From positions 23,199,498 through 23,231,773 of the forward strand of contig NC_069002.1 of the NCBI RefSeq assembly GCF_001194135.2: 32,276 bases of DNA. Direction: 5' to 3'. Origin of the DNA: Octopus bimaculoides (taxonomy: Eukaryota). A model generated the notes under the pieces. The model made no database searches. It worked only from the letters and a program-made list of their open reading frames with translations, and was not told the DNA's origin. A program made the position numbers and the translations under genes. Positions 7,077 through 31,536 of this stretch are shown in pieces (positions within the stretch are counted from its first letter, which is position 1; each line of letters begins with the position of its first letter).

Positions 7077-7296
7077 GTATACTTAATTAGATCAATATAA
7101 AACTTTAATTTAATTTCTCAAATTGAATTAATTGGGCATGAAAACAAATATAGGGACTAAGAGTTTGTTTGGAATTGAATATGTTCTTATAGACTGATGT
7201 CTATAGCTCAATTACTCCATTTTGTTTTTTCTCACACACACACACACACACACACTTTTACATACATACATATATACATGCATATACACACACACA

Positions 7297-7453
7297 CGAG
7301 GGGCTTTTTTCAGTTTCCATCTTCCAAATCCACCCGCAGTGCTTTGATTAACCCAACACTATAGTAGAAGGCATTTGCCAAAGCTGCCACATTGTGGAAC
7401 TGAACCCAAGACTACATAGCTGGGAAGTGGACTTCTGAACACCACACAGCCAT
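7297..7453 (-). mobile_element. SINE family A, 5' part
   Basis: ttttcagtttccatcttccaaatccac...ggaactgaaccc...accacacagccatgc. Confidence 0.85.
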
Positions 7454-8319
7454 GCATACACACACGCACACACGCACACACACACATGCACACACACACA
7501 CACACACACATTCATATTCACACACACTCACACGCATACACATATTCACAGAAACACACACACATTCACACATGTGCATTTTCAAATTCACACACACATA
7601 CACGCACATACATTTATTTATTTATTTAAAGAAAAATTAAAGTTAAGAAAGCAAAAATTTGGTTTGAGCAACAAATCCAGATTTTATATTCTTTGAATCA
7701 AATTCTCATTAAGAGAAAGAAAGAAAGAAAGAAAGAAATGAAGATGAGCAAAAGAGCTCTGAAGGTTTTGAAAGTGAAAGTAGGAGGGAAAAAGTGAGTG
7801 GGGGCGAGATAGAGAGAAGGAAATAAGATTGCGAAAGATTTTAGATTGAATGTATGAGGAAAAGGAGAGAGAGAGAGAGGGATAGAGATAGAGGGGTGAG
7901 AGAGAGAGAATTTGTTTGAGTGTGAGGGAGAGGAGGGAGGAAGATGGAAGCTAATACTGCATTGTTTTTGGTTCAATGGAAACTTTTGAGAATGCCCCCT
8001 CCCCCCATCCCTGCTCTTCTGAGAAATAACAATGATCTGTAATTAAATATAGATTGTCATTAGAGATGGTTCTTCAGTGGTGGTCTTTTAGTTAACATAT
8101 TACTACCATATGGTGCCAGTATAATTCTACACATCACTCTTCTGAGATAAAAATAAAATTGTATATGCATGTGTGTGTGTGTGCACGTGTGTGTGTGTGT
8201 TTGTCAATGTGTGTGTGTGTGTGTGTGTTAATAGATTTATGTGATAGTTTTTTGTTCTGTTTTTAGGGAATCAAAGAAATCCATTTGGGAGAATAGGAGA
8301 AACACTAAGTAGAATATTA

Positions 8320-8591: not shown

Positions 8592-8980
8592 TTTTATCTT
8601 CTACTTGTTTTGGTCATTTGACTGTGGCCATGTTGGGGCATCTCTTTGAAGAATTTTACTTGCATGAATCAGCCCCTGTACTTATATTTTTTGAGCCTGG
8701 TACTTATTCTATCAGTCTCTCTTTGCTGAACTGCTAAGTCATGGGGGCATAAACCCACCAACACCAGTTGTCAAGTGGTGATGGGACAGACAGATAGACA
8801 CACACACACACACACACACACAACAGGCTTCTTTCAGTTTCTCTTTGCCAAATCCACTTACAAGGCTCTGTTTTGGCCCAAGGCTATAATAGAAAACTTT
8901 AGCCCAAGGTATCGGGCAGTGGGACTGAACCTGGAACCATGTAGTTGGGTAGCAAACTTCTTATGACATAGCCATGCCTG
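8592..8980 (-). mobile_element. SINE family A, near full length
   Basis: ggtcatttgactgtggccatgttgggg...tacttattctatc...caccagttgtcaag...ggcttctttcagtttc...gggactgaacctggaaccatg. Confidence 0.88.
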
Positions 8981-9401: not shown

Positions 9402-9757
9402 GTGTGTGTGCTGTTATAATGCTTGTTTTGCCAGACCCTCATCGCTTAGGCAGAAATAGATTTGCAATTGGAATATTACAGCCAGGTGTTCTTCCTGTCA
9501 CCAACACTCCCTTACCCTTTCTCGTGCCCATGCCATTGGTCACACCTCAGCCTTTATGCTCTGTGTCTCAAATCCAATCCACCACATTCTCTTTGCCTTC
9601 ACCTCCCACCCCACCCCACCACCTTCTGCCACCTCTTGTGTCTTCCTCCTCCCACCAATTCCTAACCTGGCTTAATTGTTAGAGTTGCTCTTATTTGTGT
9701 AATAGAAGTGGTGTACGTGCGTAATAAGTATGGTGCTCTGGGTATGACTTCAAACTG

Positions 9758-10835: not shown

Positions 10836-10892
10836 GGAATGGAAATGGAAAGGTATGTGTTTGGAGTGGTTTATATGTAATAGAAGTGGTAT

Positions 10893-11847: not shown

Positions 11848-12274
11848 GTATATTTATCTATGTAACATGCTTAGCATATATGTCATTGAAGTAGATAGAT
11901 AGATAGATATATTGTTAGGTACATATATAGATGTGTAGAAAGATAGATACATAGGTAGGGATTTAGGTAGGCAAATAGCTATAAAAGAATGGTATTTCCT
12001 TCCATTGCGGTCATTTATTCCTTGGGTATTGAATTTCTTATTAAATCGTTGTTCCAAAGGGCATGGTCAAGCATGGCCCAGCTACTGAATATTCTGCATA
12101 GAACTTCATTAAAATTTTGGTAAATGGTCACAATTAACTAAGGTCATTCATATATATTTGTGGTTAATGTCAAAATTCGGTGAGAAAAGAGAATTAAAGC
12201 CATCAACATCAATGTCCAAATCTCAGAAATTCACAGAAATTCTTATATAAAGTGATATAATATTAAATAACCAG

Positions 12275-12425
12275 GCATAGCTGTGTGGTAAGGAGCTGGC
12301 TTCCTAAACACATGGTTCCAGGTTCAGTCCTATCGTGTGGTACCTTAGGCAGGTATCTTCTACTATAGCTTCAGGCTGACCAAATCCTTGTGAAATGGAA
12401 ACTGAAGGAGCCACATAGGCATACC
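12275..12425 (+). mobile_element. SINE family A, 5' part
   Basis: ggcatagctgtgtggtaagg...catggttccaggttcagtcc...tcttctactatagc...ggaaactgaagg. Confidence 0.85.
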
Positions 12426-12552
12426 TATGCATATAAGTGTAAATATGAGTATGTGTGTATGCATGCATATCTGTTTCTGTGCATATATACGTGTGTGTGT
12501 ATATATACATACATACACACATAAATATGCATATTTGTTTCTGTGCATATAC

Positions 12553-12593
<41 letters not shown>

Positions 12594-12595
12594 TT

Positions 12596-12843
12596 CAAAA
12601 AAACACAAAAAACAATAACAAAAAAACAACAAAGTGAGGACGTGATACGGATAGTGTTATTGGACGCTCGGGAAAGGAAGGTGAGAGAGTATGACGTTTC
12701 GGGCGGAACCCTTCGTCGGAAAGACAGAAAGTTCGGAGAATGGAAAAATGGAGGAAGAGGAAAATGGCACCGATGCCCACGAGGTTACATTGTGAAAGGA
12801 CCGGAAGAGGAGGTGGTGGGGGAAAAGTTCTTTCTAAGACAGG
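12596..12843 (-). mobile_element. CpG-rich 3' end of a probable Penelope-like element, with hammerhead-like core at 12693-12719
   Basis: Minus strand ttt CCGACGA a ggg-ttccg-ccc GAAA c GTC ata, the CTGANGAAG...CGAAACGTC pattern typical of Penelope pseudo-LTRs. Locally high CpG count. The rest is lost in the gap 12844-13245. Confidence 0.6.
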
Positions 12844-15509: not shown

Positions 15510-15554
<45 letters not shown>

Positions 15555-16039
15555 TGTGAATATATACATATATAAGCACACAAACACACACACAGAAGAA
15601 GAAAGAAGGTGAGTGGATGGGTTGCAGTCTCCATTAGAATGATGAAATCCTCTCAGAGATAGAAAAAAAGAATATAACGGAGATGAAAGAGGATGAAAAA
15701 TGAGACTTTGGTCTCCACAAACTGGATATTTTAAGTAGATGTGTGGGTGTGTGTACCTGTTTATATATGTGTGTGTGTGTGTATATATATATGTATAGGG
15801 TGTTAGATGTGTATAGAGTGTAAGGTATATATATATATATATATGAGATTCTATCTGTGAGATTCTCAGCTTTTTTAGCTGCTATTTCTGAACTTCGGTA
15901 TATGGTGAAGCAAATATTTTGCTGATCCCTTAATTATATTTATAAATATATGAACTTTTGAATAAGTTCTCCACCAATAATGGTGCTTTCATACCGATGG
16001 GCTTGGTAAANNNNNNNNNNNNNNNNNNNNNNNNNNNNN

Positions 16040-16110
16040 TTCGTCCTAATTTTGGGACTGCCATGTTGGCTTGGCGATAACTATTAATTTCCAGTACCGC
16101 TGCCGTAGTC
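16040..16110. repeat. Diverged relative of the inverted-repeat arm of the 16766-17042 insert
   Basis: ttcgtcc-taattttg-ggactgccatgtt..ttggc vs ttcgtcc-taaacca-ggactgccatgtt..ttggc at 16937-16971. Confidence 0.7.
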
Positions 16111-16185
16111 TCCTTTAGAGAGACTTAGAAATATTAATAACTCTATATATATATATATATATATGTATGTACACACACACATACA

Positions 16186-16480
16186 CAATAACTTGCAAAA
16201 GTTTACAACACACAGTTAAAAGATCCAAGTTTACATTTCGTGAGTTAACGCAGGTTAATGAAGTTTCCACCATTTATGAAGATTTTTGGAATAAATTCAA
16301 TACAGGAATCAGAATGACATAATGATGAACAGAAAAAGTTTTATATGGAAGAAAGTTGAAATTCCAGACGCGAAAGTTTACAACACATAAATGGTGGAAA
16401 TTCCATTAACCTGCGTTAACTCACTACTATATGTAAACTTGGATTTTTGGCTGTGTCTTGTAAAATTTTGTGGGTCACTG
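16186..16480. mobile_element. Tc1/mariner-type MITE, 295 bp, about 90-bp imperfect TIRs
   Basis: Left arm 16186-16277 pairs with right arm 16387-16480 (gtgagttaacgcaggttaatg / cattaacctgcgttaactcac). Right end is ...CACTG followed by TA, the typical Tc1 CAGTG terminus. Confidence 0.8.
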
Positions 16481-16570
16481 TATAAATGGGTATTTGTGTG
16501 TGTGTGCATGCATCTATGTGTGTGTGTGTGTGTGTGTGTGTTTATATATATGTATATATTTATTTATATA

Positions 16571-18115
16571 TGAGAGTTGGCTGAAAAGATCATAGGCCGA
16601 CCAAGATACTCTCAAGGAATCTGATCAAGCGAGGTTTATTTTTCAACATAGTACCCCCTTGTAATTCACACACTTCTTCTATTGGTGTTGCAGTGTTTGG
16701 ATCCCATTGGGGAAGGAGCTTTCATTCTGTTGGTCAAAAAAAGTCATCAACAGTAGATATGACGTAGTAAAGATTGTTTGCCAGCATAACATGGCAGTCC
16801 TGGTTTAGGACGAATGTTTTCGAACAAGGGAATCTAGCACCCCCACTCAGATTCCCTTGTTCGAAAATATAAGGACACAGATCGTGTCATATAGCCAGCT
16901 GGAGACGATGCCTCCTGGGGCTAAATTACAGCAGCATTCGTCCTAAACCAGGACTGCCATGTTATGTTGGCAAATAATCTTTACTCCAAAGTACTGTTGC
17001 TGAATATCTCTCGTTGTGAAATTTTAAAATAGTCATTTTCTAAGTAGATATGACGTCATCATCACTGTGATACTGGTTCCCAGCCAAGTGTTTCTCATGT
17101 TGGTGAACAGATGATATTCAGATGAGGTCAATTAAGGACAATGGGAAGGATGATCTACCAGTTCAAAGCCACAAACACACACAGCAGCCATTGAAATCAA
17201 TAACTTGCATGCTCAAGCATTGTCTTGATGAAACAAGACCCCCTTTGTCAGATTTTCTGGGCTTTTGGCCTTGATAGCCTTTTGTAACTGCCTCAGCAAG
17301 TTGGCATAGTTCACTCCATTGATGATGTGGCCTTTTTGAAGATAGTCAATAAACACAATGCATTTTGCATCCAAAAGAACTGAGGCCACCATCTTCCCTG
17401 CAGATAAAACAACTTTGCCTTCTTTGGAGGGGTGTTTCCTCTGCATGGATTGTCTCTTTGTCTCTGGCTGAATCTAATACTCAATGAGGGTAAGGAAACA
17501 TGCAAGAAAACCAGCTGGATCTGCCTGAAACAATATCAGATTCTCCCATGATGTGATCAGCTTTTGATCAGGTGTCGGATGATGTGGCACCCACCAAGCA
17601 GAAACCTTTTGTCATGCCAAGTTCATTGTGCCAAATATTCTCAACTCTCTCATAGGATATGCTAATGGTATTGGCTATTTGATTTGTAGTCAATCATGTG
17701 TTATCTATTACCATGTGGTGAACACCATTAATGTTTTCCTCTGCGGTGGCAGTTGCAGGACGTCCAGACAGTGAGTCATCTTCAAGACTCTCCTTTCCTC
17801 TCCTAAATTCAGCTGTCCACTTTTGCCCTGTTGATAAAGCTGGAGTGGTCATCCCCAAACGTAGCAACCATGTCAGCATGAATGTTGTTGGGGGCTAAAC
17901 CCTTTTTCCTGTGGGTACAAATTTTGTCAGTTTGTAAGACAAATCGATAGTAGTTCCTTTTGAAGTCTCTTTTGAACGGTGAGATGTCAGTTTAACTGGA
18001 AAGAAACAATGCAGTTATTAATAAGAAGAGTTGAAATTAATGCATGCAAGATTTCACAGCTCTAGCACCACTCCTTCATAGTCAGCCTATGAACTTTTCA
18101 GCCCCACCACCATCA
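16571..18115 (-). mobile_element. Full-length defective mariner (irritans-like), about 1.25 kb plus nested insert
   Basis: TIRs ggctgaaaagatcataggccgac / gtcagcctatgaacttttcagcc, TA on both sides. Track ORFs give WTAEFRRGKESLEDDSLSGRPATAT and SAGKMVASVLLDAKCIVFIDYLQKGHIINGVNYANLLRQL...KGVLFHQDNA. Confidence 0.93.
16766..17042. mobile_element. 277-bp unclassified hairpin element inserted in the mariner, 14-bp TSD
   Basis: Perfect direct repeat agtagatatgacgt at 16752-16765 and 17043-17056. 51-bp inverted repeats (16766-16816 / 16935-16985, 49/51). Perfect 19-bp inner hairpin 16817-16867. 57-nt one-sided tail 16986-17042. Confidence 0.88.
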
Positions 18116-18131
18116 TATGTATATAGTTAGG

Positions 18132-18220
18132 TGCAGGCATGACTGTGTGGTTAAGGAGTTTGTTTCCCAACCTTATGGTTTCAGGTTCAATTCTGTTGTG
18201 CAATGCATTGGGCAAGGCTT
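18132..18220 (+). mobile_element. SINE family A head fragment
   Basis: gcaggcatgactgtgtggttaaggagtttgtttcccaacc...ggttcaattc. Confidence 0.7.
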
Positions 18221-18349
18221 GTGTATGTATGTATGTATGTATGTGTGTGTGTGTGTGTGTATGTGTGTGGATGTATATATATGTGTGTATATATGTATAA
18301 ACATGTGTGTGTGTATAATGTGTTTTTATATATTTATTTGTGTTTCATC

Positions 18350-18760
18350 TTTTACTTCTTTCAGTCATTAGACTGTGGCCATACTGGAGAACCACCCTGA
18401 AGGGTCTATTGAAACAAAGTGACCCCAGGACATGTGTTTTTTTAATCTAGTACCTATTCTATTGGTCTGTTTTAGCCAAATCACTAAGTTACAGGGATAT
18501 AAACAAACCAACAACATTTGTCAAGCAGTGGTTGGAGACACACGCACACACACACATCCATGAATAATTCTCCCATTGTTCCAATGTGCATTCATACATA
18601 AATAATTTATATATGATGGGCTTCTTTTCAGTTTCTGTCTACTAAATCCATTCACCAGGCTTTAACTGACCCAGGGCCATAGCAGAAGATATTTGAAGAA
18701 GGTGCCATATAGTGGGATTGAAGCTGGAACCATTCAGTTATGAAGAAAACTTCTTATCAT
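18350..18760 (-). mobile_element. SINE family A, near full length, diverged
   Basis: ttcagtcattagactgtggccatactgg...ctagtacctattctattgg...gggcttcttttcagtttctgtctac...gggattgaagctggaacc. Confidence 0.85.
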
Positions 18761-18777
18761 ACAATGTCTATCTCTGT

Positions 18778-18907
18778 TCTATATTTAGGAGATGAGGAAT
18801 TATATACATTATTTACATTATTTACATTTGATGGGCATATGGCGTAGTGGTTAAGAGTGTGGGCTACTAACCCCAAGATTCCGAATTCGATTCCACACAG
18901 TGACCTG

Positions 18908-18963
<56 letters not shown>

Positions 18964-19120
18964 CAACAACAACATTGACAAATACTTTAGGAATGAGAAC
19001 CCAGGTTTGAAGTTTCCCCAAGACACTTGATGAAGGCTGGAGGGTATATCAACCGAAACGTGTTAACAACAAACAAGATGAGGACAAATATCCATCAAAT
19101 GTTAATAATGTAAATAATGT
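18778..19120 (+). mobile_element. tRNA-headed SINE with hammerhead-like 3' region, inverted copy of its 3' end at the 5' side, and 15-bp TSD
   Basis: TSD aatgtctatctctgt at 18763-18777 and 19116-19130. IR 18806-18834 / 19092-19120 (28/29). A box tggcgtagtggttaag, B box gaattcgattcc. Internal (AAT)n(AAC)n. Hammerhead-like gacac TTGATGA a ggctgg..tcaacc GAAAC at 19022-19064. Confidence 0.85.
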
Positions 19121-19131
19121 CTATCTCTGTC

Positions 19132-19188
<57 letters not shown>

Positions 19189-19189
19189 A

Positions 19190-19495
19190 CCTGACACTCC
19201 ATCAGTTATGACAACGAGAGTACCAGTTGATCTGATCAACTGAACAGCCTGCTCATGAAATTCACAAGCAAATGGCTGAATATTCCACAGACATGTGTAC
19301 TCTTAATGTACTTCTCAGGGAGATTCAGGCTGACCCTTTGAAATCACAGGTACTACTCATTTTTCCCAGCTGCATGGATTGGAGCAATGTGAAACGAAGT
19401 GTCTTGCTCAAGGACACAACACATTGCTGGGAATTGAACTCATGACCATATGACCATGAGTTGAATCCCTTAACCACTAAGCCATGTGCTTTCAG
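19190..19495 (-). mobile_element. tRNA-derived SINE family D
   Basis: ctgacactcc...ccagttgatctgatcaac...gaacagcctg...gtgtcttgctcaaggacacaac...gggaattgaactc...ttaaccactaagccatgtgc. Second copy at 20650-20927. Confidence 0.88.
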
Positions 19496-19795
19496 TTAGA
19501 TATGTATATGTGATGGTAAAAAGGTCTACCTGGAGGTTCTTGTTTCAATCCTACTGCATGAAATCTTTAGCAAATGTTATTTTGTATATCCTTGGGCTGA
19601 CCCATGCATTGTGAGTGAAATTGGGTTTGTGGAAATTGTACTGAAGCTCATCAGGTGGATTATGTCTGTAATTCAAAATGTACAGCCTTGTCATACAATG
19701 TATTACTCTGATTCTGCCAGAGATTCCCAAGTCTGTGGAGTACTTGGCCACTTACATGTTAATTTTGGACTTGGCCTATTTGGTTAGTGGAACAA

Positions 19796-20533
19796 TTAAT
19801 CTTTTAAGATTTAAACCAGGCATATCCGGCCCAAATATTTTACCTGTTTTTTTTTTTTAAAAAACCAATCAGGTGTGAGAGCCCAGATTTCACACCTGCA
19901 AATGTCCATTCTAAGAAGAAAACTCATTTTTCATTGTTGGAATCTCAAAGCTACAAGATATCCTTTTCTTTTCTTTTATTCTTTTAATTAGCTGCACTCA
20001 TTTGACTGTGGCCATGCTGGAGCACTGCTTTTAATCAAAGAAATTAACTCCAGGACTTATTCTTTGTAAGCCTGGTACTTATTCTATTGGTCTGTTTTGC
20101 TGAACCACCAAGTTACAGGGATGTAAACATACCAACATCAGTTGTCAAGCAATAGTGGGGGGACAAAGACAGACATGCTTACATGTATACACACATGTAT
20201 ATACATACATACATACATACAAATATGTATATATGCCGGGCTTCTTTCAGTTTCCGTCTACCAAATCCATTCACAAGGCTTTGGTTGGCCTGAGGCTATA
20301 GTAGAAGACACTTGCCCAAGGTGCCATNNNNNNNNNNGTAGAAGACACTTGCCCAAGGTGCCATGCAGTGGGACTGAACCCGGAACCATGTGGTTGGTAA
20401 GCAAGCTTCTTACCACTCAGCCACTCCTGACACTCATGATTAATTCAAAACAAGATAGTGCATGATTAATTTGAAACAATGGTAAAAATAAGAATTAAAT
20501 TTGACAGAGGAATCTGAATGCTAAAAGATTTAA
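19796..20533. mobile_element. TTAA-flanked MITE interrupted by a SINE
   Basis: TTAA at 19796-19799 and 20530-20533 with decayed TIRs (tcttttaagatt / aatgctaaaagat). The two halves 19796-19960 and 20430-20533 align with 10893-11085. Confidence 0.7.
19975..20426 (-). mobile_element. SINE family A, full length (contains a 10-N gap)
   Basis: catttgactgtggccatgctggagc...gccgggcttctttcagtttccgtctacc...gggactgaacccggaaccatgtggttggtaagcaagc. Confidence 0.92.
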
Positions 20534-20649
20534 TCCTCATCATTTCATTTCAAATTTGCATACTTCTGCAAATCTCATCAAAATATGTGTTTGATGCAAA
20601 TCTCTTTAAAATGCAAATATCATTTCAGTATACATGACATGCTTAACTA

Positions 20650-20927
20650 ACTGACACTCCGCCGGTTATGGTGATGAAGGTTCCAGTCAATCCAATCATC
20701 AGAACAGCCTGTTTGTGCAATTAACGTGCAAGTGGCTTACATTATACGGGATATGACAAGGCTGGCCCTTCTGTAATTACAGGTACACCTCGTTTTTTTC
20801 TAGCTGAGTAGACTGGAACAATGAAAAGAAATGTGTCTCACTCAGGCACACAACACACTGCTGGGAATTGAACTCATGACCTTAAGATTAAGAGCTCAAT
20901 AACCAAACCGCTGAGCCATGCACCTTG
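20650..20927 (-). mobile_element. tRNA-derived SINE family D
   Basis: ctgacactccgccggttatgg...gaacagcctg...caaggctggccct...ctgggaattgaactcatgacc...gagccatgcacc. Confidence 0.85.
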
Positions 20928-20947
20928 CTAACCCTAACCCTAACCCT
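20928..20947. repeat. Three units of telomeric-type (TAACCC)n
   Basis: ctaaccctaaccctaaccct read directly. Confidence 0.8.
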
Positions 20948-21019
20948 ATTAATTGCACATCTTATCTTTCCATAGAAATATCACTCTTTTTTTATATTGG
21001 ATTTAAGGCTGTTATTGTA

Positions 21020-21660
21020 TTCCTTAGCTTTGGTTTGTGTGGAGGATCTTTTTGCAGAAAGCCGTTTTCTGTAAAACAAGTGCTTTGGAATTCTTCCATC
21101 TCCCACACAAATCAGTTGGCGCATGCGTCTCAGTCCGCTTTATTGCAAGAGAAATTCTATATTTACAACATTCCCTGTCTCCATGACTTAAACATTCACT
21201 CTCACAGTCACTCCAAGATATATGCAACATTTGTCAAAGATGCTTTTACTGCAGAACACTCCAGCTGATTAATGCATCCTTGAATATTTCAGCTCCATGT
21301 TTCACTGCCAGATAACAAAATAAATGAAATACATGTTCTGAAAATAGATATTTAATAGAATTTTTTGATATATCATCGAGGTCAAACCAAAGATTGTAAT
21401 TTTGCAAAAGATATCCATGATTTCTGAATTCTGTTTGCAATTTCACCATCAAGATATGTACCCCTGTTTAATATTCTGCCAAGATATTTGAAGGAAGATA
21501 TATTTTTCAAAGTTCTACCAAATAGTATTAATTTAGGATTTGCATAAAACTTTACTGGACAAGGCTGATAAACAACATTTTTATGAAGATTTATTGTGTG
21601 TTCTGACATGTTACATACCAATGAGATTCTATCCATAAAAATTTCAAGATCTTTTTCATT
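21020..21660 (-). pseudogene. RTE-clade (BovB-like) LINE fragment, RT thumb and C-terminus
   Basis: Track ORF MDRISLVCN...TINLHKNVVYQPCPVKFYANPKL...FKYLGRIL...LDGEIANRIQKSWISFAKL resembles RTE MDRFSxAC..FGLTIS.KKT.V..QPAPG..Y..P.I...KFTYLGS.LS....DDE...RI.KAS.AFGRL. Frameshifted. Confidence 0.85.
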
Positions 21661-22119
21661 GTGTATGACAGTATATGTATATGTATATATGTCTGTGTAT
21701 ATGGATATGTGTGTGTAAGCCTGTATCAGATTTTTTTTTAATTTTCTCTTTCTTTTCCTCTTAATCTTGTTCAGATTTGCTTTACTGTTTGCTTCAGTTT
21801 ATCTATATACTAGTACACCCTTACCAGCAAAAATGGAAACATTAAAAAAAATAATAAAAGATAAAACTGATATTTAATAAATACATTGACATAACATACA
21901 TATATTTTCTATTGTTAATATAAATCAGTTGTTTAAAATGTATTACTATTATTAAACTATACATATTGTAATGCACATCTGTAGTATACATTTCAAGCAT
22001 TACACATATACATTGTAGAGTTTATGTGTATCATACATTGGCGAACATAATTTAGATGTTCATTTACTTTTGCAAGGTGTGAAAGTGATACAAAGAGAAG
22101 TAACTGGGCCAAGCTCATG

Positions 22120-22915
22120 TTTTCCCTCTCGTTTCTGGCTCTCATGGGAATTATTCAAGTATTTAATTTCTAATTATTGTTGCATTTAGCTTTTAAACAA
22201 CAAACAAGTATCCTTCATTTATGAAACTGTTCTATTGTTTAAGTGATTTTTTATAATCAATTCCGTTGAGAAAATCTTCAAAAGCTTTTTTTCTGAATCA
22301 ACTTGGAAATCAAGAAGGCTTGTACTTATACAAAAGATACTTAGCTTCATGCATACAATTTTTTCACAACATTCCTCTTTTGTTAAAACCACAAATTTCT
22401 TGAAACAAAATTCTCAATTTTTTACTCAAAGGTCACACTATACTTTTCATTTGAAACTGACAAAACCATAGAGAATTTTTTATAAGCTTTCACAAATGAA
22501 TATTTCTGCCTATGAAACCAGTTTTGAATGTTAGTTCCATTGTGCCGGTATATACTTTAGACACATATCTGTTGTTTGTTTCTACTTTAGAGCTGCTATT
22601 TTATCAATTTTGCCAAACAGCTACCATCTTGTGGGCAGTTATCACAGATTCTGTAGTTGCATGATTTGTGTTGAACAGCTGTTTGTCTTTCTGTTTCGTT
22701 CGGTTTGCTGCATTATAGTTTCTGATAATTTTTCTGGAAATTTTTTCTAGTTGGACAAGTAACCTTAGCTCTGTTCTTATTTAATATCTTTCTATATTTA
22801 TATCCTAGTGGAAAACAATAATCTATCAAGTTAAGGAACTTCCTAGGTGTATTACTTTTTACTGCTGGAAATGTTGTCATGGAGTTTTGTTCCTAAAGAG
22901 GGTTGAACTCATGAC
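22120..22915 (-). pseudogene. Penelope-like element relic: RT thumb, Cys linker, GIY-YIG endonuclease
   Basis: Manual translation: FNP...RKFLNLIDYCFPLGYKYRKILNKNRAKVTC (22757-22845), KSCNYRICDNCPQDGSCLAK (about 22607-22666), KVETNNRYVSKVYTGTMELTFKT (22521-22588, YIG-like YTG). Many stops. Confidence 0.8.
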
Positions 22916-23384
22916 CCATTTTGTTAGTTCTGCCATGGAACTACACGCTAAAAAAACATCATGTAAACAATAAGCAGGACAGAAAAGAAATGTGTGCACA
23001 TGCGTACGCACACACACACATACACACGCACACACACACACACACACACATTTATTATAGAAGATAATGCAACCCTGCTTGTCTGGTTCATCTTCTTGTC
23101 TCAGTTACTAAGTTGACTCAATAAAAATATTAAAAAATAACATAAAAACAAGGAGAGAAAAGGTGTGGGTTAGAAAAGTGATTTCTGGTGTGTTAGACCA
23201 ATGCCAAATCAAGCAGAAAGTCAACAAGACTGACAGAAAATATTAAAAAGAAAAATCAAAAAAGTGACAACAAAAATAAGCAAAGATGATTCAAAGAATC
23301 ACACTTCCTAACTTGAGAAATTTAGGCTACAAATTTTGGTGAGATATGTTGTTTATTTAATCAGCAGTAGTACTTTTCTGTTGT

Positions 23385-23515
23385 TTATTTTATTGGCCCT
23401 GAAAGAATGACAGGTGAATGTGACCTTGGTGTGATTTGATCTCAGAACAGAAAGAAGACACAACAATATACCACATAGAATTCTTATATGATGCCCCACT
23501 AATTTTACCACTTTC
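23385..23515 (-). mobile_element. Highly diverged SINE family E head
   Basis: ttattggccctgaaagaatgacagg...gatttgatctcagaac aligns with 25250-25370 and 25520-25580. Confidence 0.55.
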
Positions 23516-24329
23516 AAAGAGGAGTAAATTAATTAAAAAGATCAGCCAAATAAAAGTATATGGAAGATTGAAACCATTTCTAATTTTCATTCAAATATTT
23601 GAAGAATTAATGCAAAATTACGCAAAGTGAAACAGTTGGTATTTTAAAGGTGAGGTTAGATTCCACCAAGTCAGATACTTCTGAGATCAGTTTTGCCATA
23701 TTTTACAGAAGTTCTTGGATAGCTAAGAAGCTAATGTCAAAGCAGAATATTTGTAATCATCATCATCATTGTTTAACGTCCGCTTTCCATGCTAGCATGG
23801 GTTGGACTCTGTTATGCAAAATGAGAATTGTGTAGCAAGGAATTATTGGTGAGTAACACAGGTATAGAAACAATGGGTTGGACAAGTTAAATGGTATGTC
23901 ACACATGGAAAACAGGAATATAATCAGAATGAAAGAAAATATGTAAAAGACAATAATGTGAACATGAAGATAATGGTGAAAGGTTAAAATGACAAAAGAA
24001 AGATCCGGATTAAAGGAAGATAATGAAGTATGAGTAGATGGGTTTATTACAAAAAAAGAAAAAAAAAAAGAAAAAGAAAACAACCCAAAACCTAGACAAA
24101 AAGCAAAAACACTGATTTCTGATTGAGTCTAAGTGAAATCGTTTAATATTTTACCAGACATTACAATAAAATCAAATTGTTCTTTAAATGTAATAAAATT
24201 AATTCATGGAGTAATTATCGTGTAAATTAGATTAGCTCAAGATGACAAACTGAAGTTTTGTTAAGTCCATTTGAAAGATCCAGTTTATTTTGTACCATTT
24301 AGTTGAGCAGTTCCCCTCACCCTTTACAG

Positions 24330-25002
24330 CAGTGTTTCTCAACCAGTTTTTTTCTTAAATATGGGCCTATTTGGTTACTATTTGGTTTTGGTGACCACCA
24401 AAGCCATTCGATGTTAAAAAACTAGTTTTGTAGATACTTCTTTCGAAATCCCTATATTGTCTGGCACCTGTGAATCATAGCCACGGTCGTTACCATGTAA
24501 AAGGCACCCATACGTTGTAGTTGTGGTGGTTGCTGGTGCCATGTAAATGACACCTGTGAATCGTAGCTGCAGTTGTTACTAGTGTCATTTAAATGGCATG
24601 TAAAAGTACCCATTACACTCCTGGAGTGGTTGGCATTAAGAAAGGCACCCAGCCATAGAAACCATGCTAAAACAGACTGAAACCTGGTGCAGCTCTCTGG
24701 CTTATCAGCTGCAGTTAAACTGTCTAACTCATGCCTGAATAGAGAGTGGATGTTAAATGACGACGACATTGTTGTTGTTGTTCACTTGTATAGGTTTGCA
24801 GTAGCATTCACTGAGTGACGATGTTTTAGTGGCTGAAGACATGTTGAATTCTGTAAAACATTAGAGAAAGAAATCTAGCAATAAATCCATTGAAAGCAAA
24901 AATTTTCATGGACCCTTGAAATACTCCTTTTTTGCTTGTGTGGACCCTGTAGAATCTTATATGGACCCCAGAGGTCATAAGATCCCCAGTTGCAAACCAC
25001 TG
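24330..25002. mobile_element. hAT (Charlie-like) non-autonomous element with 8-bp TSD and nested SINE
   Basis: Perfect TSD ctttacag at 24322-24329 and 25003-25010. Termini CAGTGtttctcaac / gttgcaaacCACTG. Subterminal ggaccc repeats. Confidence 0.88.
24455..24770 (+). mobile_element. SINE family C nested in the hAT element
   Basis: ggcatgtaaaagtacccattacactcctggagtggttggcattaagaaaggcacccagccatagaaacc...ggatgttaaatgacgacgac is the reverse complement of the 2425-2690 type. Confidence 0.8.
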
Positions 25003-25129
25003 CTTTACAGGAGCTCTGAGACGAGTAGGAGGGAGGGATGTATCCTCAGGTCAGAAATATGGCTTGAATGCCTGCAACAGAGTGGACACTGCTAAGAACA
25101 CCAAAGGTACTGTGTGGAGGCATTAGACC

Positions 25130-25600
25130 CCACAAGGAGGTCATGACAGGATTTGAACTCAGAATGCAAACTGCTAGGACAAATACTACTATACACCCCG
25201 TCTGATATTCTTACAGTTTGGTTAAGGAAGCACCCTGATTTGGTAAGTTTTTTATTGGCACTGAATGGATGAAAGGCAAAGCTGATTATGATGGGATTTG
25301 AACTCAGATGGTAGAAAGTTGGAACGAACACCACAAGACATTTTTATCTGATGTTCTGACAACTTTGCCAAAGTGTTGTGTTGAAGAAGAGTGAATATAA
25401 GCAAATATCAAAGAAGATGATATGTTATAATTCTTTCTACTGGAAGCACAAGGCCTCAAATTTGGGAGAAGGGATTAAGCCAATTACATCGACTCACCAG
25501 TGTTCGACTGGTGCTTATTTAACTGACCCCAAAAGGATGACAGGCAGAGTCAACCTTAGTGGAATTTGGACTCAGAACGTAGCAGCAGATGAAAAAGTTG
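25130..25600 (-). mobile_element. Cluster of three co-oriented SINE family E pieces
   Basis: gatttgaactcaga at about 25150 and 25295, and gaatttggactcaga at about 25562. Only the last keeps the downstream body (ttctttctactggaagcacaaggcctcaaattt...). Confidence 0.75.
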
Positions 25601-26374
25601 ACATATTATATCAATGACAATTTTATTGAGAAAATAGTGATTTCTGATTGAGTCTCTAAGAGGAAACATTCTCATCCTCATCGATTGTAACTTCACACCA
25701 GACATTGCAATATTCTCAAATAATTTTTTTGTTAAATGTAAAAGAATTTAAGTTGTGGGATGAAGGTTTTAGAAGTTGTACCAGTTCTAGATTAGAAACT
25801 GAGGCTTGTTGATTCCATGGAACGTCCTAACTAAATTAAGATATGTTTTCTTTGATAGGAAGAAACTATTTTATACTTAAGCTGTAGATATTAAACTGCA
25901 GGAATATTCGATGAACACAATTTAGTTACATAAAAGAGAAGAGAAAAAACTCCCTTCCCTTTTATGTCTTAAATTAGTTCTTGTAATATCTAAATGTTCT
26001 TGTAATATCTAAACGTTCTCTAAGAAACTTTAGCACACATCACTGATACATAACATTACGTAGTGTTTGTAATTCTTTAATTTTTAATTTCATAAATCAT
26101 ATTTTATTTTATTTTGCATAAGCTTGTAGTAAATTAAAAGAAAAATTTGCAAACACTTTGATGTTTAATAACCCATAATGTAACAGAGGAAGAGAATTGG
26201 TTAAGAGGTTTGGGAAATAATGGAGAGGTAAAGAAATACCAGGGTGGAAGGAAACTGTAGAAAGATGAAGGAAGATGTCGACAGTACTGCTAAAAGGTGA
26301 TGTTAGGATAATGAACTTTAGACAAGAGATGACAAAAAGACCCAATGAAAGGTGAGATTTTGTGTTCAAAAAAG

Positions 26375-26422
26375 ACCCATCTAACCCATGTCAGCATGGA
26401 AAAACAGACGTAAAAATGATGG
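26375..26422 (+). mobile_element. SINE family C 3' end
   Basis: ccatctaacccatgtcagcatggaaaaacagacgtaaaaatgatgg. Confidence 0.7.
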
Positions 26423-26479
26423 TGTTTGTATAAAGATGAGGCCATTATCAGATTGGGGTTATTGGGTTAGCAGTTGAGG

Positions 26480-26690
26480 TTTTTACTGGGATGAGGTGAA
26501 ACTGGTGTTTGCTTTTTAGGAAGACAATGCCAAGTCAACGAATACTAGACCAAAACACTATACCTGACAATGTTTGACCTGAAGAAGGCTTTCAACAAAA
26601 TAAATACCTCTCCTCTGCTTTCCAGTGGATGCTAAGAGAACTAAGTCCTCAGGATTGACTTGTGAGATTCCCACAAACCATAAGAAAATC
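26480..26690 (+). pseudogene. Non-LTR (RTE-like) reverse transcriptase fragment
   Basis: Manual translation QLRFLLG*GETGVCFLGRQCQVNEY*TKTLYLTMFDLKKAFNKI resembles QFGFMPGRSTTDAIF..RQLQEKY...K.LY.AFVDLEKAFDRV. Confidence 0.65.
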
Positions 26691-26970
26691 CCTTAGATAT
26701 CAATATCATATTGACAGGTACAGCATACATATGTATTTATTTAGTGGGTAGAATATAGTGGGTAGTTTGAGATATATCAATGTTCTGAGTCCAGTCATTG
26801 GTATCACTGGATGTAGGAAACACATGAGTTGTCCAAAGGGAGTTTTGCTACAAATAAATTTAACCACTGAACCCAGCACACACTATTTTACCTGCATTTC
26901 AATTGCCACCTTTCCAGCTTCATAACGAGTATATTCCCTGTGTGTGTGTGTCTATCTATCTATCTATCTA

Positions 26971-27009
<39 letters not shown>

Positions 27010-27450
27010 TCATTCATTCATTCGGTTTTCATTGTGCCTTATGACACTTGAGGCAACAGCAAGGTTGTTCCACCTTCTAACACTGAATTCGTCCTTGACA
27101 GCTTGTTCCATTGTTAACCTGCTGCTTTTAAGATCTTTTGTTATTGTTCTCCACCACATTTCCTTTGGTCAGCTACGTCTTCTTTTACTTTGTGGAACAC
27201 ATTGCAAAGCGATCCTTATAATTGAGTATGGTTTATAGCGACCAACTCGACCCAGCCATTTACATCTCTTTGCTTTAGTAGTTTCTCTTATTGGTTTCAT
27301 GTTAGCCTTGATGTGTAGTTGGTTATTTGAGATCATATTTGACCTGTAGACCTTCAAAATTTTTCATAAACATTTATTATATCTTCTCCATCTGGTGAGA
27401 AATATTATCTAATAAACACAGTATAGGATCCTATCATCCTGCTTTAGCTT
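27010..27450 (-). pseudogene. RTE-type LINE 3' end with (GAAT)n tail
   Basis: Track ORF ISNNQLHIKANMKPIRETTKAKRCKWLGRVGR...IIRIALQCVPQSKRRR, then RPKEMWWRTITKDL. Followed on the element strand by gaatgaatgaatga and the (AGAC)n/(AGAT)n microsatellite 26950-27010. Confidence 0.8.
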
Positions 27451-28657
27451 GTCTTGTCATGCCACGTGGGTAGAGCCTGAGGACTGCATGAAAGCACCAG
27501 ATGTGTTATAAAATGCTGTCTGAGTTGTTTTTCATTGCATTAAACTATTAGTAGCTCATAAAAATATATACTGTATGTATATATGTCCCATCATCGTCAC
27601 TAGAAGATGGTAGGTGTTCATGCTAAGAGATTCTTTTGAATTATTCAAACGTACTACATGGGAATGTTGGTACTTGTCTCCATTTTGGATGAGAATACAT
27701 GAAGTTACATGAGATTGTATGGGATTTTGAAATAAATAAATAATTAAACATGCCATGAGAGGTAACTTTTAAGGATATCTTAATTGTTATCTCTTTTGCA
27801 TTAGCCCTTGATTTTTCCTCGTACATCAGTTAATTCTTTAATCGTCTTATGCAAGAACGCTCATGCACATCCATATTTATAAATATATAAACATATAAAT
27901 ACATAAATGTGCACATACACACCCATACAAAATATACATACCTGGACACATGCACAAAGACACACACACAGACACACACACACACACACATACACACATA
28001 CATACACATATAAAACATAAATAGAACACTAAAGAGAAGTGAGGTGAGAGAATAGATGTTTATTGCATTCTTTTATAGCTGTTTCATACTCTTGTTAGTT
28101 ATGTTATAGATATTATATCAGCATTCACAAGTATATATAAAATATACATCATCATCATCATCATCCAGTATTTTAAATCTGGGTTTTGTCTCTGTTAACT
28201 GGGGTGGCCAGATCTACCTTAATGCCATAGCAACTGAAGCAGTCAGGTGCAGCCTACCTCAACCTTTGGGCTGGATGGCTGGTGCCGATTCTCCCTTGCT
28301 ATCATGAGGCTTTTTTGAAGCTGGATTGTCTATGGGGAGCATGCCCTTGCTTACCCCCAACCTCAGTTTCTAAACATGAGTGGTCCCGAGACCAAGGCCT
28401 CTACCAAGATTTTTAGGAAATGTGGTGGAAAACTAGCTCAGGATGGCATGGATGCTAATCTCTGAGACCCCTTTCCGAGCCCCCGTAACTACATACATAA
28501 AAATATATATGCGTGTATTCATCTATCTATGCAAATGTTCAGTGAAGAAAATTAACGGACTACTCTTAAGAATGATTCCTGGTAATCCATGCTCTTGGCA
28601 GAGCTTAATGCAAAATTTGTTAGATTCTTTGAACCCCTATTATTGTTGTTAAGGTAA

Positions 28658-28993
28658 AGGGTAAAGACCCCCTTCAGTCATGAATGACCATGGGATTGCA
28701 CCTAGAAAGTTCCCCTATGAGGCACAAATCTGGGCAAGGTTGTTTATGGAAGACCTGCAGTTGCCCTTGTATACCAGCCTCTCGTCTTCATACCACTGAT
28801 ATTGTCCAAGGGAAAGGCAAAGTGGCCGATACAGTTTGGCACCAATGGCATCGCAACTCATTTCTACAGCTGAGTGAGCAAGAGCAGCATGAAGTAAAAT
28901 GTCTTGCACAATACACAGCCTGGTTTGGGAATTGAACTCACTACCTCATGATTGTGAGTCTGATGCTGTAGCCACAGACCCATGCACCTTCAC
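28658..28993 (-). mobile_element. tRNA-derived SINE family B, full length
   Basis: Reverse complement of the 9071-9401 type. Confidence 0.9.
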
Positions 28994-29014
28994 ATTTATT
29001 ACTATATATATGTG

Positions 29015-29046
<32 letters not shown>

Positions 29047-30428
29047 TGTATGTATGCCCTTGTGCATAGATGTGTTTTGCATCTCTTTATCAGCGTCTAC
29101 AACAAAGCAGAGACTGTTGTAGAGTTTCTTTGTTTTTCTTATATAAATATTCTTGCCAGTTATGTTACAAATGTTTTAATTTTTCCACGTAATCATTAAA
29201 TTTATAACGACAGTGCATAATCAAGCAACAACAACAACAAAAACAACTACACCAAATACTATAACAATCACACAAGTACTATAACATCACCGCTACCACT
29301 GACAACAAGAAATACTGCTACCACGACACCACCACCACCAATACCACAAATTCATAACAACAACAGCAACAACATCTCCACACACCAATTTCAAACTTAT
29401 ATATTTATATTTATGAAATAATAAAGAATTACTGAAAATTTTCATTAAAAATGTTTCAAATAAGCAATATTTTAATAAAGAATTGCAAAGAATATTTGTG
29501 TGATGAGTTAGTACTGGTAGTAGTACATTGTGGTGGTTGAGTAGGAATCATGGGGTGTTGGTGGTTGTAGTCATTTATCAAGGAGTGTGGTGATGGTGGT
29601 GGTGGTGGGGTTATTCATTTCTCAGCTAATTTAGCCTTTAATTACTGCACGTTATAATTAAATAGCTTCGGAACAAGTTTTCCTACTTATTTTGTATTCT
29701 ATTGTATTTATCCTATCTACTTGGCATTGTGTGTGTGTGTGTGTGTGAGTGAATATTATGTAATATTTTATCATATATGCATAAAATACATACATATATA
29801 TATATNNNNNNNNNNNNNNNNNNNNNNNNNNNNNNNNNNNNNNNNNNNNNNNNNNNNNNNNNNNNNNNNNNNNNNNNNNNNNNNNNNNNNNNNNNNNNNN
29901 NNNNNNNNNNNNNNNNNNNNNNNNNNNNNNNNNNNNNNNNNNNNNNNNNNNNNNNNNNNNNNNNNNNNNNNNNNNNNNNNNNNNNNNNNNNNNNNNNNNN
30001 NNNNNNNNNNNNNNNNNNNNNNNNNNNNNNNNNNNNNNNNNNNNNNNNNNNNNNNNNNNNNNNNNNNNNNNNNNNNNNNNNNNNNNNNNNNNNNNNNNNN
30101 NNNNNNNNNNNNNNNNNNNNNNNNNNNNNNNNNNNNNNNNNNNNNNNNNNNNNNNNNNNNNNNNNNNNNNNNNNNNNNNNNNNNNNNNNNNNNNNNNNNN
30201 NNNNNNNNNNNNNNNNNNNNNNNNNNNNNNNNNNNNNNNNNNNNNNNNNNNNNNNNNNNNNNNNNNNNNNNNNNNNNNNNNNNNNNNNNNNNNNNNNNNN
30301 NNNNNNNNNNNNNNNNNNNNNNNNNNNNNNNNNNNNNNNNNNNNNNNNNNNNNNNNNNNNNNNNNNNNNNNNNNNNNNNNNNNNNNNNNNNNNNNNNNNN
30401 NNNNNNNNNNNNNNNNNNNNNNNNNNNN

Positions 30429-30471
<43 letters not shown>

Positions 30472-30482
30472 AATATATATAT

Positions 30483-30723
30483 CAATCATCAGTGTATCTT
30501 ATATCTGTAAACAAAGCACAATCTAAAGCATAGAGCAGTAATGTATTTATATGCAGTTCAATCTATGTCTGGGTCAAAGCCAAAGACAAATATAACTCTT
30601 CATAGTTGAAGAGATCTACCTGTCTTTGGGAGTCTGACGAGCCATGCAAGGGACTAAGGCCTTTATGGATGTGAAACCATTGGTCACTCTATGACCACAC
30701 ATAGATTAAACTGCATATAAATA
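30483..30723 (+). mobile_element. About 240-bp insert: inverted repeats enclosing a hammerhead
   Basis: IR 30544-30576 / 30692-30723 (2 substitutions plus 1 indel). Candidate TSD ataaatat(a/c)tatat at 30469-30482 and 30717-30730 (low complexity). Confidence 0.7.
30630..30689 (+). ncRNA. Type-I hammerhead ribozyme, canonical core
   Basis: gagt CTGACGA g-ccat-gc-aagg...cctt-t-atgg-atgt GAAA c cattg GTC actc. Stem I gagt/actc, CUGACGA, GAAA, near-palindromic stem III (accattggt), GUC triplet. The base of stem II is imperfect. Confidence 0.8.
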
Positions 30724-30799
30724 TCTATATATGTATGTATGTATAGAAGTATTTGGTGCCTACTCAAGCACGTATGCCCTGCATGTTATGTATGAATAT

Positions 30800-30958
30800 G
30801 CAAGAGTGGCTGTGTGTTAAGTAGCTTGCTTACCAAGCACATGGTTCTGGGTTCAGTCCCACTGCGTGGCACCTTGGGCAAGTGTCTTCTACTATAGCTT
30901 CAGGCTGACAAAGCCTTGTGAGTGGATTGGGTAGATGGAAACTGAAAGAAGCCTGTCA
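30800..30958 (+). mobile_element. SINE family A, 5' part
   Basis: gagtggctgtgtgttaagtagcttgcttaccaagcacatggttctgggttcagtcccactgcgtggcaccttgggcaagtgtc...ggaaactgaaagaagcctgtc. Confidence 0.92.
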
Positions 30959-30969
30959 TATATATATAT

Positions 30970-31360
30970 GGCCAGAGTGTCCTTAAAAGTGGCTGTACTC
31001 TAGTGTGGTCATAGTCCAGTGGCTGAAAGCTGCAAAAGAACAAAGGCTCATAAATAAATATTAGCATCTCTTCATTATCTGATGTTCCNNNNNNNNNNNN
31101 NNNNNNNNNNNNNNNNNNNNNNNNNNNNNNNNNNNNNNNNNNNNNNNNNNNNNNNNNNNNNNNNNNNNNNNNNNNNNNNNNNNNNNNNNNNNNNNNNNNN
31201 NNNNNNNNNNNNNNNNNNNNNNNNNNNNNNNNNNNNNNNNNNNNNNNNNNNNNNNNNNNNNNNNNNNNNNNNNNNNNNNNNNNNNNNNNNNNNNNNNNNN
31301 NNNNNNNNNNNNNNNNNNNNNNNNNNNNNNNNNNNNNNNNNNNNNNNNNNNNNNNNNNNN

Positions 31361-31417
<57 letters not shown>

Positions 31418-31536
31418 GGCCAGAGTGTCCTTAAAAGTGGCTGTACTCTAGTGTGGTCATAGTCCAGTGGCTGAAAGCTGCAAAAGAACAAAGGCTCATA
31501 AATAAATATTAGCATCTCTTCATTATCTGATGTTCC
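30970..31536. other. 119-bp identical duplication across an N-gap (probable assembly artefact)
   Basis: 30970-31088 is identical to 31418-31536. Each copy is preceded by a (TA)n run of different length. Confidence 0.85.

Follow-up and report, generated by a model that had tools for sequence, protein, structure and literature searches.

Three short inserts in the genome of Octopus bimaculoides share an insertion layout that matches the published insertion scar of Penelope-like elements (PLEs), and we therefore favour, with some reserve, PLE-type target-primed integration as its best explanation. The inserts, here called (a), (b) and (c), lie in a 32,276-nt stretch of contig NC_069002.1 (RefSeq assembly GCF_001194135.2, positions 23,199,498 to 23,231,773; hereafter the window). 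All three follow a common plan: a direct copy of the element ends in a 3' arm, an inverted copy of that arm lies upstream and runs on for 28-61 nt into a tail, and a target site duplication (TSD) of 14-15 bp, a candidate in (c), brackets the whole unit. The units are 230-340 bp long and their arms 29-51 nt. True insertion is shown for (a) and (b), in which the layout is real and non-random; in (c) the layout is plausible. The coordinates and lengths in the original prediction, which named the three inserts, all proved correct on rechecking. It had also held the elements to be unrelated in sequence, and we found no significant sequence similarity among (a), (b) and (c).

The clearest case is (a), which interrupts a minus-strand pseudogene (16600-18000) for a mariner transposase of the Mos1/SETMAR-like kind, itself frameshifted. 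By conceptual translation, the best named match of this pseudogene is the O. vulgaris protein P0002 (E = 1e-122). The insert is bracketed by a perfect 14-nt direct repeat, AGTAGATATGACGT, at 16752-16765 and 17043-17056, and the left copy encodes the residues DVIST of the interrupted mariner open reading frame (ORF). When the insert and one TSD copy are removed, the emptied site translates as ...HLAGNQYHSDDDVISTVDDFFDQQNES..., which is colinear with the C-terminus of P0002 (SDDDVMCAVDDFFNQRDES) and aligns to it without a gap; the 14 nt were therefore single before insertion. This empty-site alignment to the mariner proves that (a) is an insertion; the window contains no similar second mariner copy that could serve as an internal empty-site control.

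Within (a), read in the proposed minus sense, the direct copy ends in a 51-nt arm (16766-16816) that lies flush with the TSD and is 96% complementary to its inverted copy at 16935-16985. The body between them (16817-16934, minus strand) has an inner 22-bp hairpin (16814-16835 / 16849-16870) beside the 3' arm, so that the reconstructed 3' region on the minus strand consists of this hairpin followed by the 51-nt arm, with a folding z of -5.0. The one-sided extension, or tail, occupies the remaining 57 nt (16986-17042, minus strand) and is contiguous with the inverted arm. No promoter-like head was seen in (a). A second, old and partial copy of the same family, consisting of arm and tail, lies nearby on the plus strand (16040-16143); its left side is cut by the gap at 16011-16039, and it ends at a (TA)n run (16144-16164). 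It is 65% identical to (a) over 117 nt (E = 3.6e-6), and here, too, the tail is contiguous with the arm, which makes the tail family sequence rather than unique filler. Judged from these two copies, the tail of (a) is a conserved continuation of the family's 3' end that is absent from the direct copy. The tails had originally been described as unique; the recurrence of this one contradicts that description, and we reject the possibility that a tail unique to each insertion was added.

Two further observations concern the surroundings of (a). The closest proteins to its mariner target come from O. vulgaris (64%) and from cichlid fishes (61%), which, on protein similarity, hints at a horizontally spread mariner lineage. 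A neighbouring foldback element that resembles a miniature inverted-repeat transposable element (MITE) occupies 16159-16517 and is flanked by (CA)n and (TG)n; its arms are about 100 nt long, with a core at 16238-16278 / 16386-16426 that matches at 93%, and it has no clean TSD.

Element (b), on the plus strand, entered another repeat. Its perfect 15-nt TSDs (AATGTCTATCTCTGT) lie at 18763-18777 and 19116-19130, and the left one forms the final 15 nt of a short interspersed element (SINE) of a kind that is abundant in octopus. Seven further copies of that SINE end in 15 nt that align with this TSD, so the right TSD duplicates host-SINE sequence, and (b) was inserted exactly at the host's 3' terminus. 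Five nt beyond the right TSD a (TA)n run begins (19135-19172). From left to right, (b) comprises a 28-nt tail (18778-18805), an inverted copy of its own last 29 nt (18806-18834; 28 of 29 positions complementary to 19092-19120), a tRNA-derived SINE head (18833-18905), an internal (AAT)n(AAC)n microsatellite identified by repeat analysis (18908-18975), and a unique 3' domain that ends in short (T/A)AATAATGT repeats. These repeats form the 3' arm (19092-19120), whose last 5 nt overlap the TSD. The core of the inverted repeat is 29 nt with one mismatch, and it can be extended to 40 nt at 88%.

By its promoter-like boxes and its alignments, (b) is a tRNA-derived SINE. The A box TGGCGTAGTGG (18840-18850) fits the consensus TRGCNNAGTGG, a B-box-like TTCGATTCC follows 34 nt downstream, and the head aligns with the heads of other tRNA-SINE families in the window at the same start position; neither ARAGORN, even at 70% thresholds, nor the Rfam tRNA model called a tRNA in this head. 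Among the three inserts, (b) is the only one that is demonstrably non-autonomous. Its direct copy is full length from the first base of the head, and the inverted piece consists of the last 29 nt plus 28 more. The inverted arm and tail lie directly upstream of the tRNA-like head and hence outside an RNA polymerase III (pol III) transcript; from this position we infer that they were most likely created at integration and not inherited.

Read as an extension of the 3' end, the tail of (b) is complementary to the 16 nt that precede the 3' arm (core AGATGAGGA; 19064-19120 with 18778-18805), and the full 3' end would fold into a stem-loop whose loop is the 29-nt arm (z = -2.0). The abundant SINE into which (b) was inserted is itself tRNA-derived and about 400 bp long, with at least 8 copies in 32 kb (examples at 35-260, 1074-1440, 7233-7470, 8599-8979, 12244-12470, 18350-18777, 19982-20463 and 30797-30967). 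These copies are plain, without inverted arms. The family is also present in the O. vulgaris locus L001 (OX597827.1) and was not found in L002 or L003, two long ENA contigs with related mariners, which we therefore take not to be octopus.

The layout of (c), on the plus strand, is less secure. A 61-nt tail (30483-30543) leads into an inverted copy of the 3' arm (30544-30575), followed by a hammerhead-like motif (30629-30690) and by the 3' arm itself (30695-30726). The inverted repeat 30544-30572 / 30695-30723 is non-periodic and matches at 93% over 29 nt, or at 88% when extended to about 32 nt. The candidate TSDs (30469-30482, inside (TA)n, and 30717-30730, overlapping the arm end) agree at 13/14 positions; this match cannot be distinguished from the surrounding TA-rich microsatellite and is no better than chance. 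The left flank is short and itself microsatellite: 41 nt separate the candidate left TSD from a 623-N gap (29806-30428) that lies within (TA)n. That (c) would be the weakest of the three had been anticipated, and its imperfect, TA-rich and microsatellite-like TSD bears this out.

To estimate how often such a layout arises by chance, we scanned the whole window for exact, non-periodic direct repeats of at least 11 nt with one flush inverted arm and a partner arm at most 90 nt off, using 100 Markov shuffles with locally matched composition as the null. The scan recovered only (a) and (b), with 0 matches in the 100 shuffles; (c) was not recovered. A scan starting from inverted repeats gave the same answer, (a) and (b), and did not find the layout in the other SINE copies of the window or of L001. 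The window is AT-rich, full of microsatellites and interrupted by nine N runs, with no long ORFs; the two flagged gaps, 20328-20337 and 29806-30428, both lie outside the elements.

The ends of the elements are associated with (TA)n. Of the four readable ends, three lie no more than 8 nt from a (TA) run of at least 5 units: (b) on its right side, (c) on its left, and the second copy of (a) where its tail finishes. Only 2.9% of window positions lie that near such a run (p ~1e-4, or ~0.006 if every gap is counted as (TA)n). Naiad PLEs, which lack hammerheads and have several lineages in Octopus spp., prefer (TA)n targets (Craig et al. 2021, PMC8557442), and the association adds new support that points in the same direction as the layout, as do the position of arm and tail upstream of the head in (b) and the contiguity of tail and arm in the second copy of (a).

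The original prediction placed hammerhead or hammerhead-like motifs upstream of the 3' arms of (b) and (c); the evidence for them is weak. We searched with a home-made type I hammerhead descriptor (core CUGANGA ... GAAA), with closure of helix II either required or dropped. The window's only match, obtained with the closure rule dropped, is the motif in (c). It combines a 5-bp helix I (GGAGU/ACUCU), the core elements CUGACGA (30634-30640) and GAAA (30673-30676), a 3-bp helix III (ACC-AUU-GGU) and a GUC site, with predicted cleavage after C30685, 9 nt before the 3' arm begins. Helix II is defective at its base and not closed at 10.1-11.1, and the Rfam hammerhead families gave no match at E<=1 in the window or at E<=10 in the short stretches of (b) and (c). 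Without the closure rule, 17% of shuffled windows give at least one descriptor match, and the folding energy of the (c) stretch is no better than that of shuffles (z = 0.1). The evidence is suggestive of, at best, a decayed hammerhead in (c).

The stretch proposed in (b) (cUUGAUGA ... GAAAC, 19023-19075) does not survive as a hammerhead: its UUGAUGA departs from the CUGANGA core, helix I is missing, the descriptor fails even with a relaxed core, Rfam gives no match, and its folding energy is again no better than that of shuffles (z = +0.9). No hammerhead motif was found in (a). Cephalopods do have type I hammerheads, with 235 Rfam matches in the giant squid (PMC6962438).

The features of the three inserts fit what is known of PLE integration. 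PLE insertions often leave an inverted, 5'-truncated copy by the upstream end, a tail of 30-40 bp usually at one end, and a variable TSD (Arkhipova 2013, PMC3846280; Craig 2021), in agreement with the signature that the original prediction gave for them. The inserts show variable TSDs (14 and 15 nt, with a weak case in (c)), inverted arms of 51, 29 and ~32 nt, and one-sided tails of 57, 28 and 61 nt. PLE junctions can also form by microhomology, as seen at 5' junctions (PMC3846280; Craig 2021; PMC8969392), and PLEs are active in octopus, with 30 recently active Penelope families in O. vulgaris (PMC13282606).

We suggest that a nick in one target strand would prime reverse transcription within the 3' part of the element's RNA, aided by a microhomology of a few bases. 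Such priming would account for the overlap between TSD and arm end, which had been reported for (b) and (c) and which we also observe (5 nt in (b); the right candidate TSD 30717-30730 against the arm 30695-30726 in (c)). On the other target strand, priming would start at the RNA's true 3' end and yield another, short cDNA of tail and arm, and the two products would then be joined head to head at a microhomology. On this proposal (b) would be a non-autonomous, tRNA-headed SINE taking the PLE route. Elements (a) and (c) may likewise be non-autonomous, or they could instead be very short, extremely 5'-truncated 3' ends of autonomous PLEs; in the latter case (c) would derive from a hammerhead-bearing clade and (a) from a hammerhead-less, Naiad-like clade.

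Several observations weigh against PLE-type integration. The hammerhead evidence is absent in (a), fails in (b) and is only suggestive in (c), and no pseudo long terminal repeat (pLTR) in partial direct tandem was found in or beside any of the three inserts. No remnant of a reverse transcriptase (RT) or GIY-YIG domain was found in the window, either in its ORF list or in a Pfam scan of its ORFs, and a tblastn search of the window with an approximate PLE consensus gave no match; a missing PLE ORF is expected for non-autonomous or truncated copies. The tails of 57 and 61 nt exceed the published 30-40 bp. In (b) the 3' arm consists of short tandem repeats, a feature shared with SINEs that depend on long interspersed elements (LINEs) of the CR1/L2 type; the 3' end of (b) matched none of the window's LINE fragments. 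Inserts in the window that lack inverted repeats are likewise bracketed by TSDs of 15-18 nt, so the length of a TSD is not in itself a mark of PLEs. Finally, the sample is three inserts and one fragment.

The flanking repeats of these other inserts are candidate TSDs of ordinary retroposons: 15 nt at 9698-9712 / 10876-10890, 1.2 kb apart, and 18 nt at 24113-24130 / 25638-25655, 1.5 kb apart, in both cases enclosing a stretch without terminal inverted repeats (TIRs). No copies of (a), (b) or (c) were found in the 23 kb of L001, composite all-frame translations of the three inserts scored nothing against the protein collection, and an exact look-up of the window's ORFs, meant to reveal independent assemblies of this locus, gave no entry. 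Pattern scans of metagenome and prokaryote-genome DNA for the arm of (a) and for the abundant octopus SINE were likewise negative, so those collections contain no octopus DNA.

Three other explanations deserve weighing, of which one concerns (c) alone. There, the apparent unit may be no single insertion at all, either a chance inverted repeat in TA-rich DNA beside a gap or a fragment of a longer element cut by that gap; we regard this as a sizeable minority possibility. The 13/14, microsatellite-like TSD, the gap (29806-30428) only 41 nt away and the failure of the architecture scan to recover (c) all speak for it. A 29-nt inverted repeat at 93% that is non-periodic, a layout and a distance from motif to arm that parallel those of (b), and the coincidence of the window's only hammerhead-descriptor match with exactly this place argue the other way. 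For all three inserts, the main rival is a LINE-driven integration accident, in which SINE retroposition by RTE, CR1 or L2-type elements was combined with twin priming or template switching and the likeness to PLEs is coincidental. LINE fragments are present in the window (20900-21800 and 27013-27363), (b) has a tRNA head and a short-tandem-repeat 3' end, TSDs of 14-18 nt are typical of target-primed reverse transcription (TPRT) generally, and 5' inversion by twin priming is established for L1. Such L1 inversions, reportedly described by Ostertag and Kazazian in 2001, resemble the present inserts in using primers from both target strands, in junction microhomology and in a single TSD around a partly inverted insert. 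They differ in the part that is inverted: L1 twin priming inverts an upstream portion of the RNA and leaves the 3' end unduplicated, whereas the present inserts carry an inverted and lengthened duplicate of the 3' end, which in (b) accompanies a full-length direct copy. Three unrelated families within 14 kb would, moreover, have to share one rare accident that none of about 20 other SINE copies in the window shows, and LINEs have not been described as preferring sites beside (TA)n. We therefore consider a LINE-driven accident unlikely.

Least probable, in our estimate, is that the inserts are cut-and-paste, MITE-like elements with subterminal inverted repeats, mobilised by an unknown transposase that makes unusually long TSDs. 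Inverted repeats do lie near both ends, the tail of (a) is fixed family sequence, and a true long-TIR element lies close by (16159-16517). Known DNA transposases, however, make TSDs of 2-11 bp and leave ends that are flush and symmetric, and flush TIRs with a short, fixed TSD in that range were found in none of (a), (b) and (c). The 14-15 bp TSDs lie outside the range of known eukaryotic DNA transposon superfamilies, and the ends are asymmetric, with one arm flush and the other 28-61 nt inside. Element (b) also has a pol III tRNA-like head right after its arm, and the microhomology overlap between TSD and arm is a feature of TPRT. PLE-type integration thus remains the reading we favour.

Among known systems, the endonuclease-positive (EN+) PLEs (Penelope/Poseidon, Neptune and Naiad) come closest, sharing the inverted end copy upstream, the one-sided extension, the variable TSD, junction microhomology and, in Naiad, (TA)n. 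The inserts differ from them in having no RT/GIY-YIG ORF and no pLTR tandem, in their size of 230-340 bp, in two longer tails and in one tRNA-like head. Short, ORF-less elements thought to use the PLE enzyme are known as the non-autonomous Chlamys derivatives of Chlamydomonas, including MRC1 (Craig et al. 2021); these have pLTRs, form head-to-tail arrays and share 3' sequence with identified autonomous partners, whereas here the host is an animal and no tandems are seen. Animal non-LTR retrozymes are arrays of 170-400 bp monomers with functional type I hammerheads, for which a dependence on PLEs has been proposed (Cervera and de la Pena 2020, PMC7229834); in vertebrates they have been tied to PLE pLTRs, in a study that did not examine invertebrates (Li, Clavereau and Pollet 2026 preprint, 10.64898/2026.07.22.740005). 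Like them, (c) is small, AT-rich and non-coding, with a type I hammerhead-like motif near its 3' end. It differs in that it is dispersed as a single unit, its ends are inverted and its helix II is defective: it occurs once in the window, with no tandem copy and no array of 170-400 bp hammerhead monomers there; (a) and (b) have no credible hammerhead. The closest precedent of a PLE-linked SINE is SMalpha of Schistosoma, a SINE-like retroposon that carries a type I hammerhead (Ferbeyre et al. 1998, cited in PMC8490949, PMC4209133). It is likewise short, SINE-like and associated with hammerhead or PLE biology; it differs in that its hammerhead is active and canonical, where the motif of (b) fails, and these sources do not report an inverted-arm-plus-tail scar.

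Non-autonomous PLE dependants have already been described, as Chlamys derivatives with MRC1 and as retrozymes; for cephalopods, or as tRNA-headed SINEs, none was found. In the literature searched, whose coverage is incomplete, there was no description of short dispersed or tRNA-headed elements with a PLE scar in cephalopods.

The remaining features of the window lie apart from the three inserts. The LINE fragments (20900-21800 and 27013-27363) are decayed 3' portions of reverse transcriptases on the minus strand, whose nearest representatives by HMMER, all LINEs from fishes, tapeworms and metagenomes, are 40-45% identical; a word-index search with LINE sequence of the window gave no match. The 10-N gap at 20328-20337, inside a copy of the common SINE, has an identical 27 nt (gtagaagacacttgcccaaggtgccat) on both sides (20301-20365) and is therefore an assembly overlap rather than missing sequence. 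On either side of the gap 31089-31360 lie exact duplications of 97 and 37 nt (30962-31088 and 31410-31536), probably assembly redundancy and possibly a recent tandem duplication. Matches to the Rfam families mir-297, mir-466 and mir-1277 (12440-12600, 15517-15597 and others) score below the gathering threshold and fall on (TG)n/(TA)n; we do not regard them as microRNA genes.

SINEs account for 11.6% of the O. vulgaris genome, whose repeat annotation lists 893 unclassified SINE families as recently active and does not link them to the Penelope families (PMC13282606). It is conceivable, though we would not expect it, that a sizeable share of these octopus families is mobilised not by LINEs but by PLEs of the Naiad or Neptune type that target (TA)n. 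Should the layout prove to be a fixed family structure, or LINE-driven, the three inserts would be a matter of ordinary repeat annotation. If PLEs do mobilise such a share of these families, the inverted 3' arm with its one-sided tail would be a general diagnostic scar of PLE trans-mobilisation, usable in any animal genome. We know of no in vitro system for PLE integration, which is poorly understood for that reason; short passengers with complete junctions, in which TSD, microhomologies and the lengths of arm and tail can all be read, would provide many natural "experiments" on the origin of the inverted copy and the tail. SINEs are by definition passengers of LINEs, and a tRNA-headed SINE with a PLE scar would add a third class of reverse transcriptase to the partners of SINEs. 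Such a partnership would also go some way towards explaining the SINE expansion by which octopus genomes differ from other cephalopod genomes.

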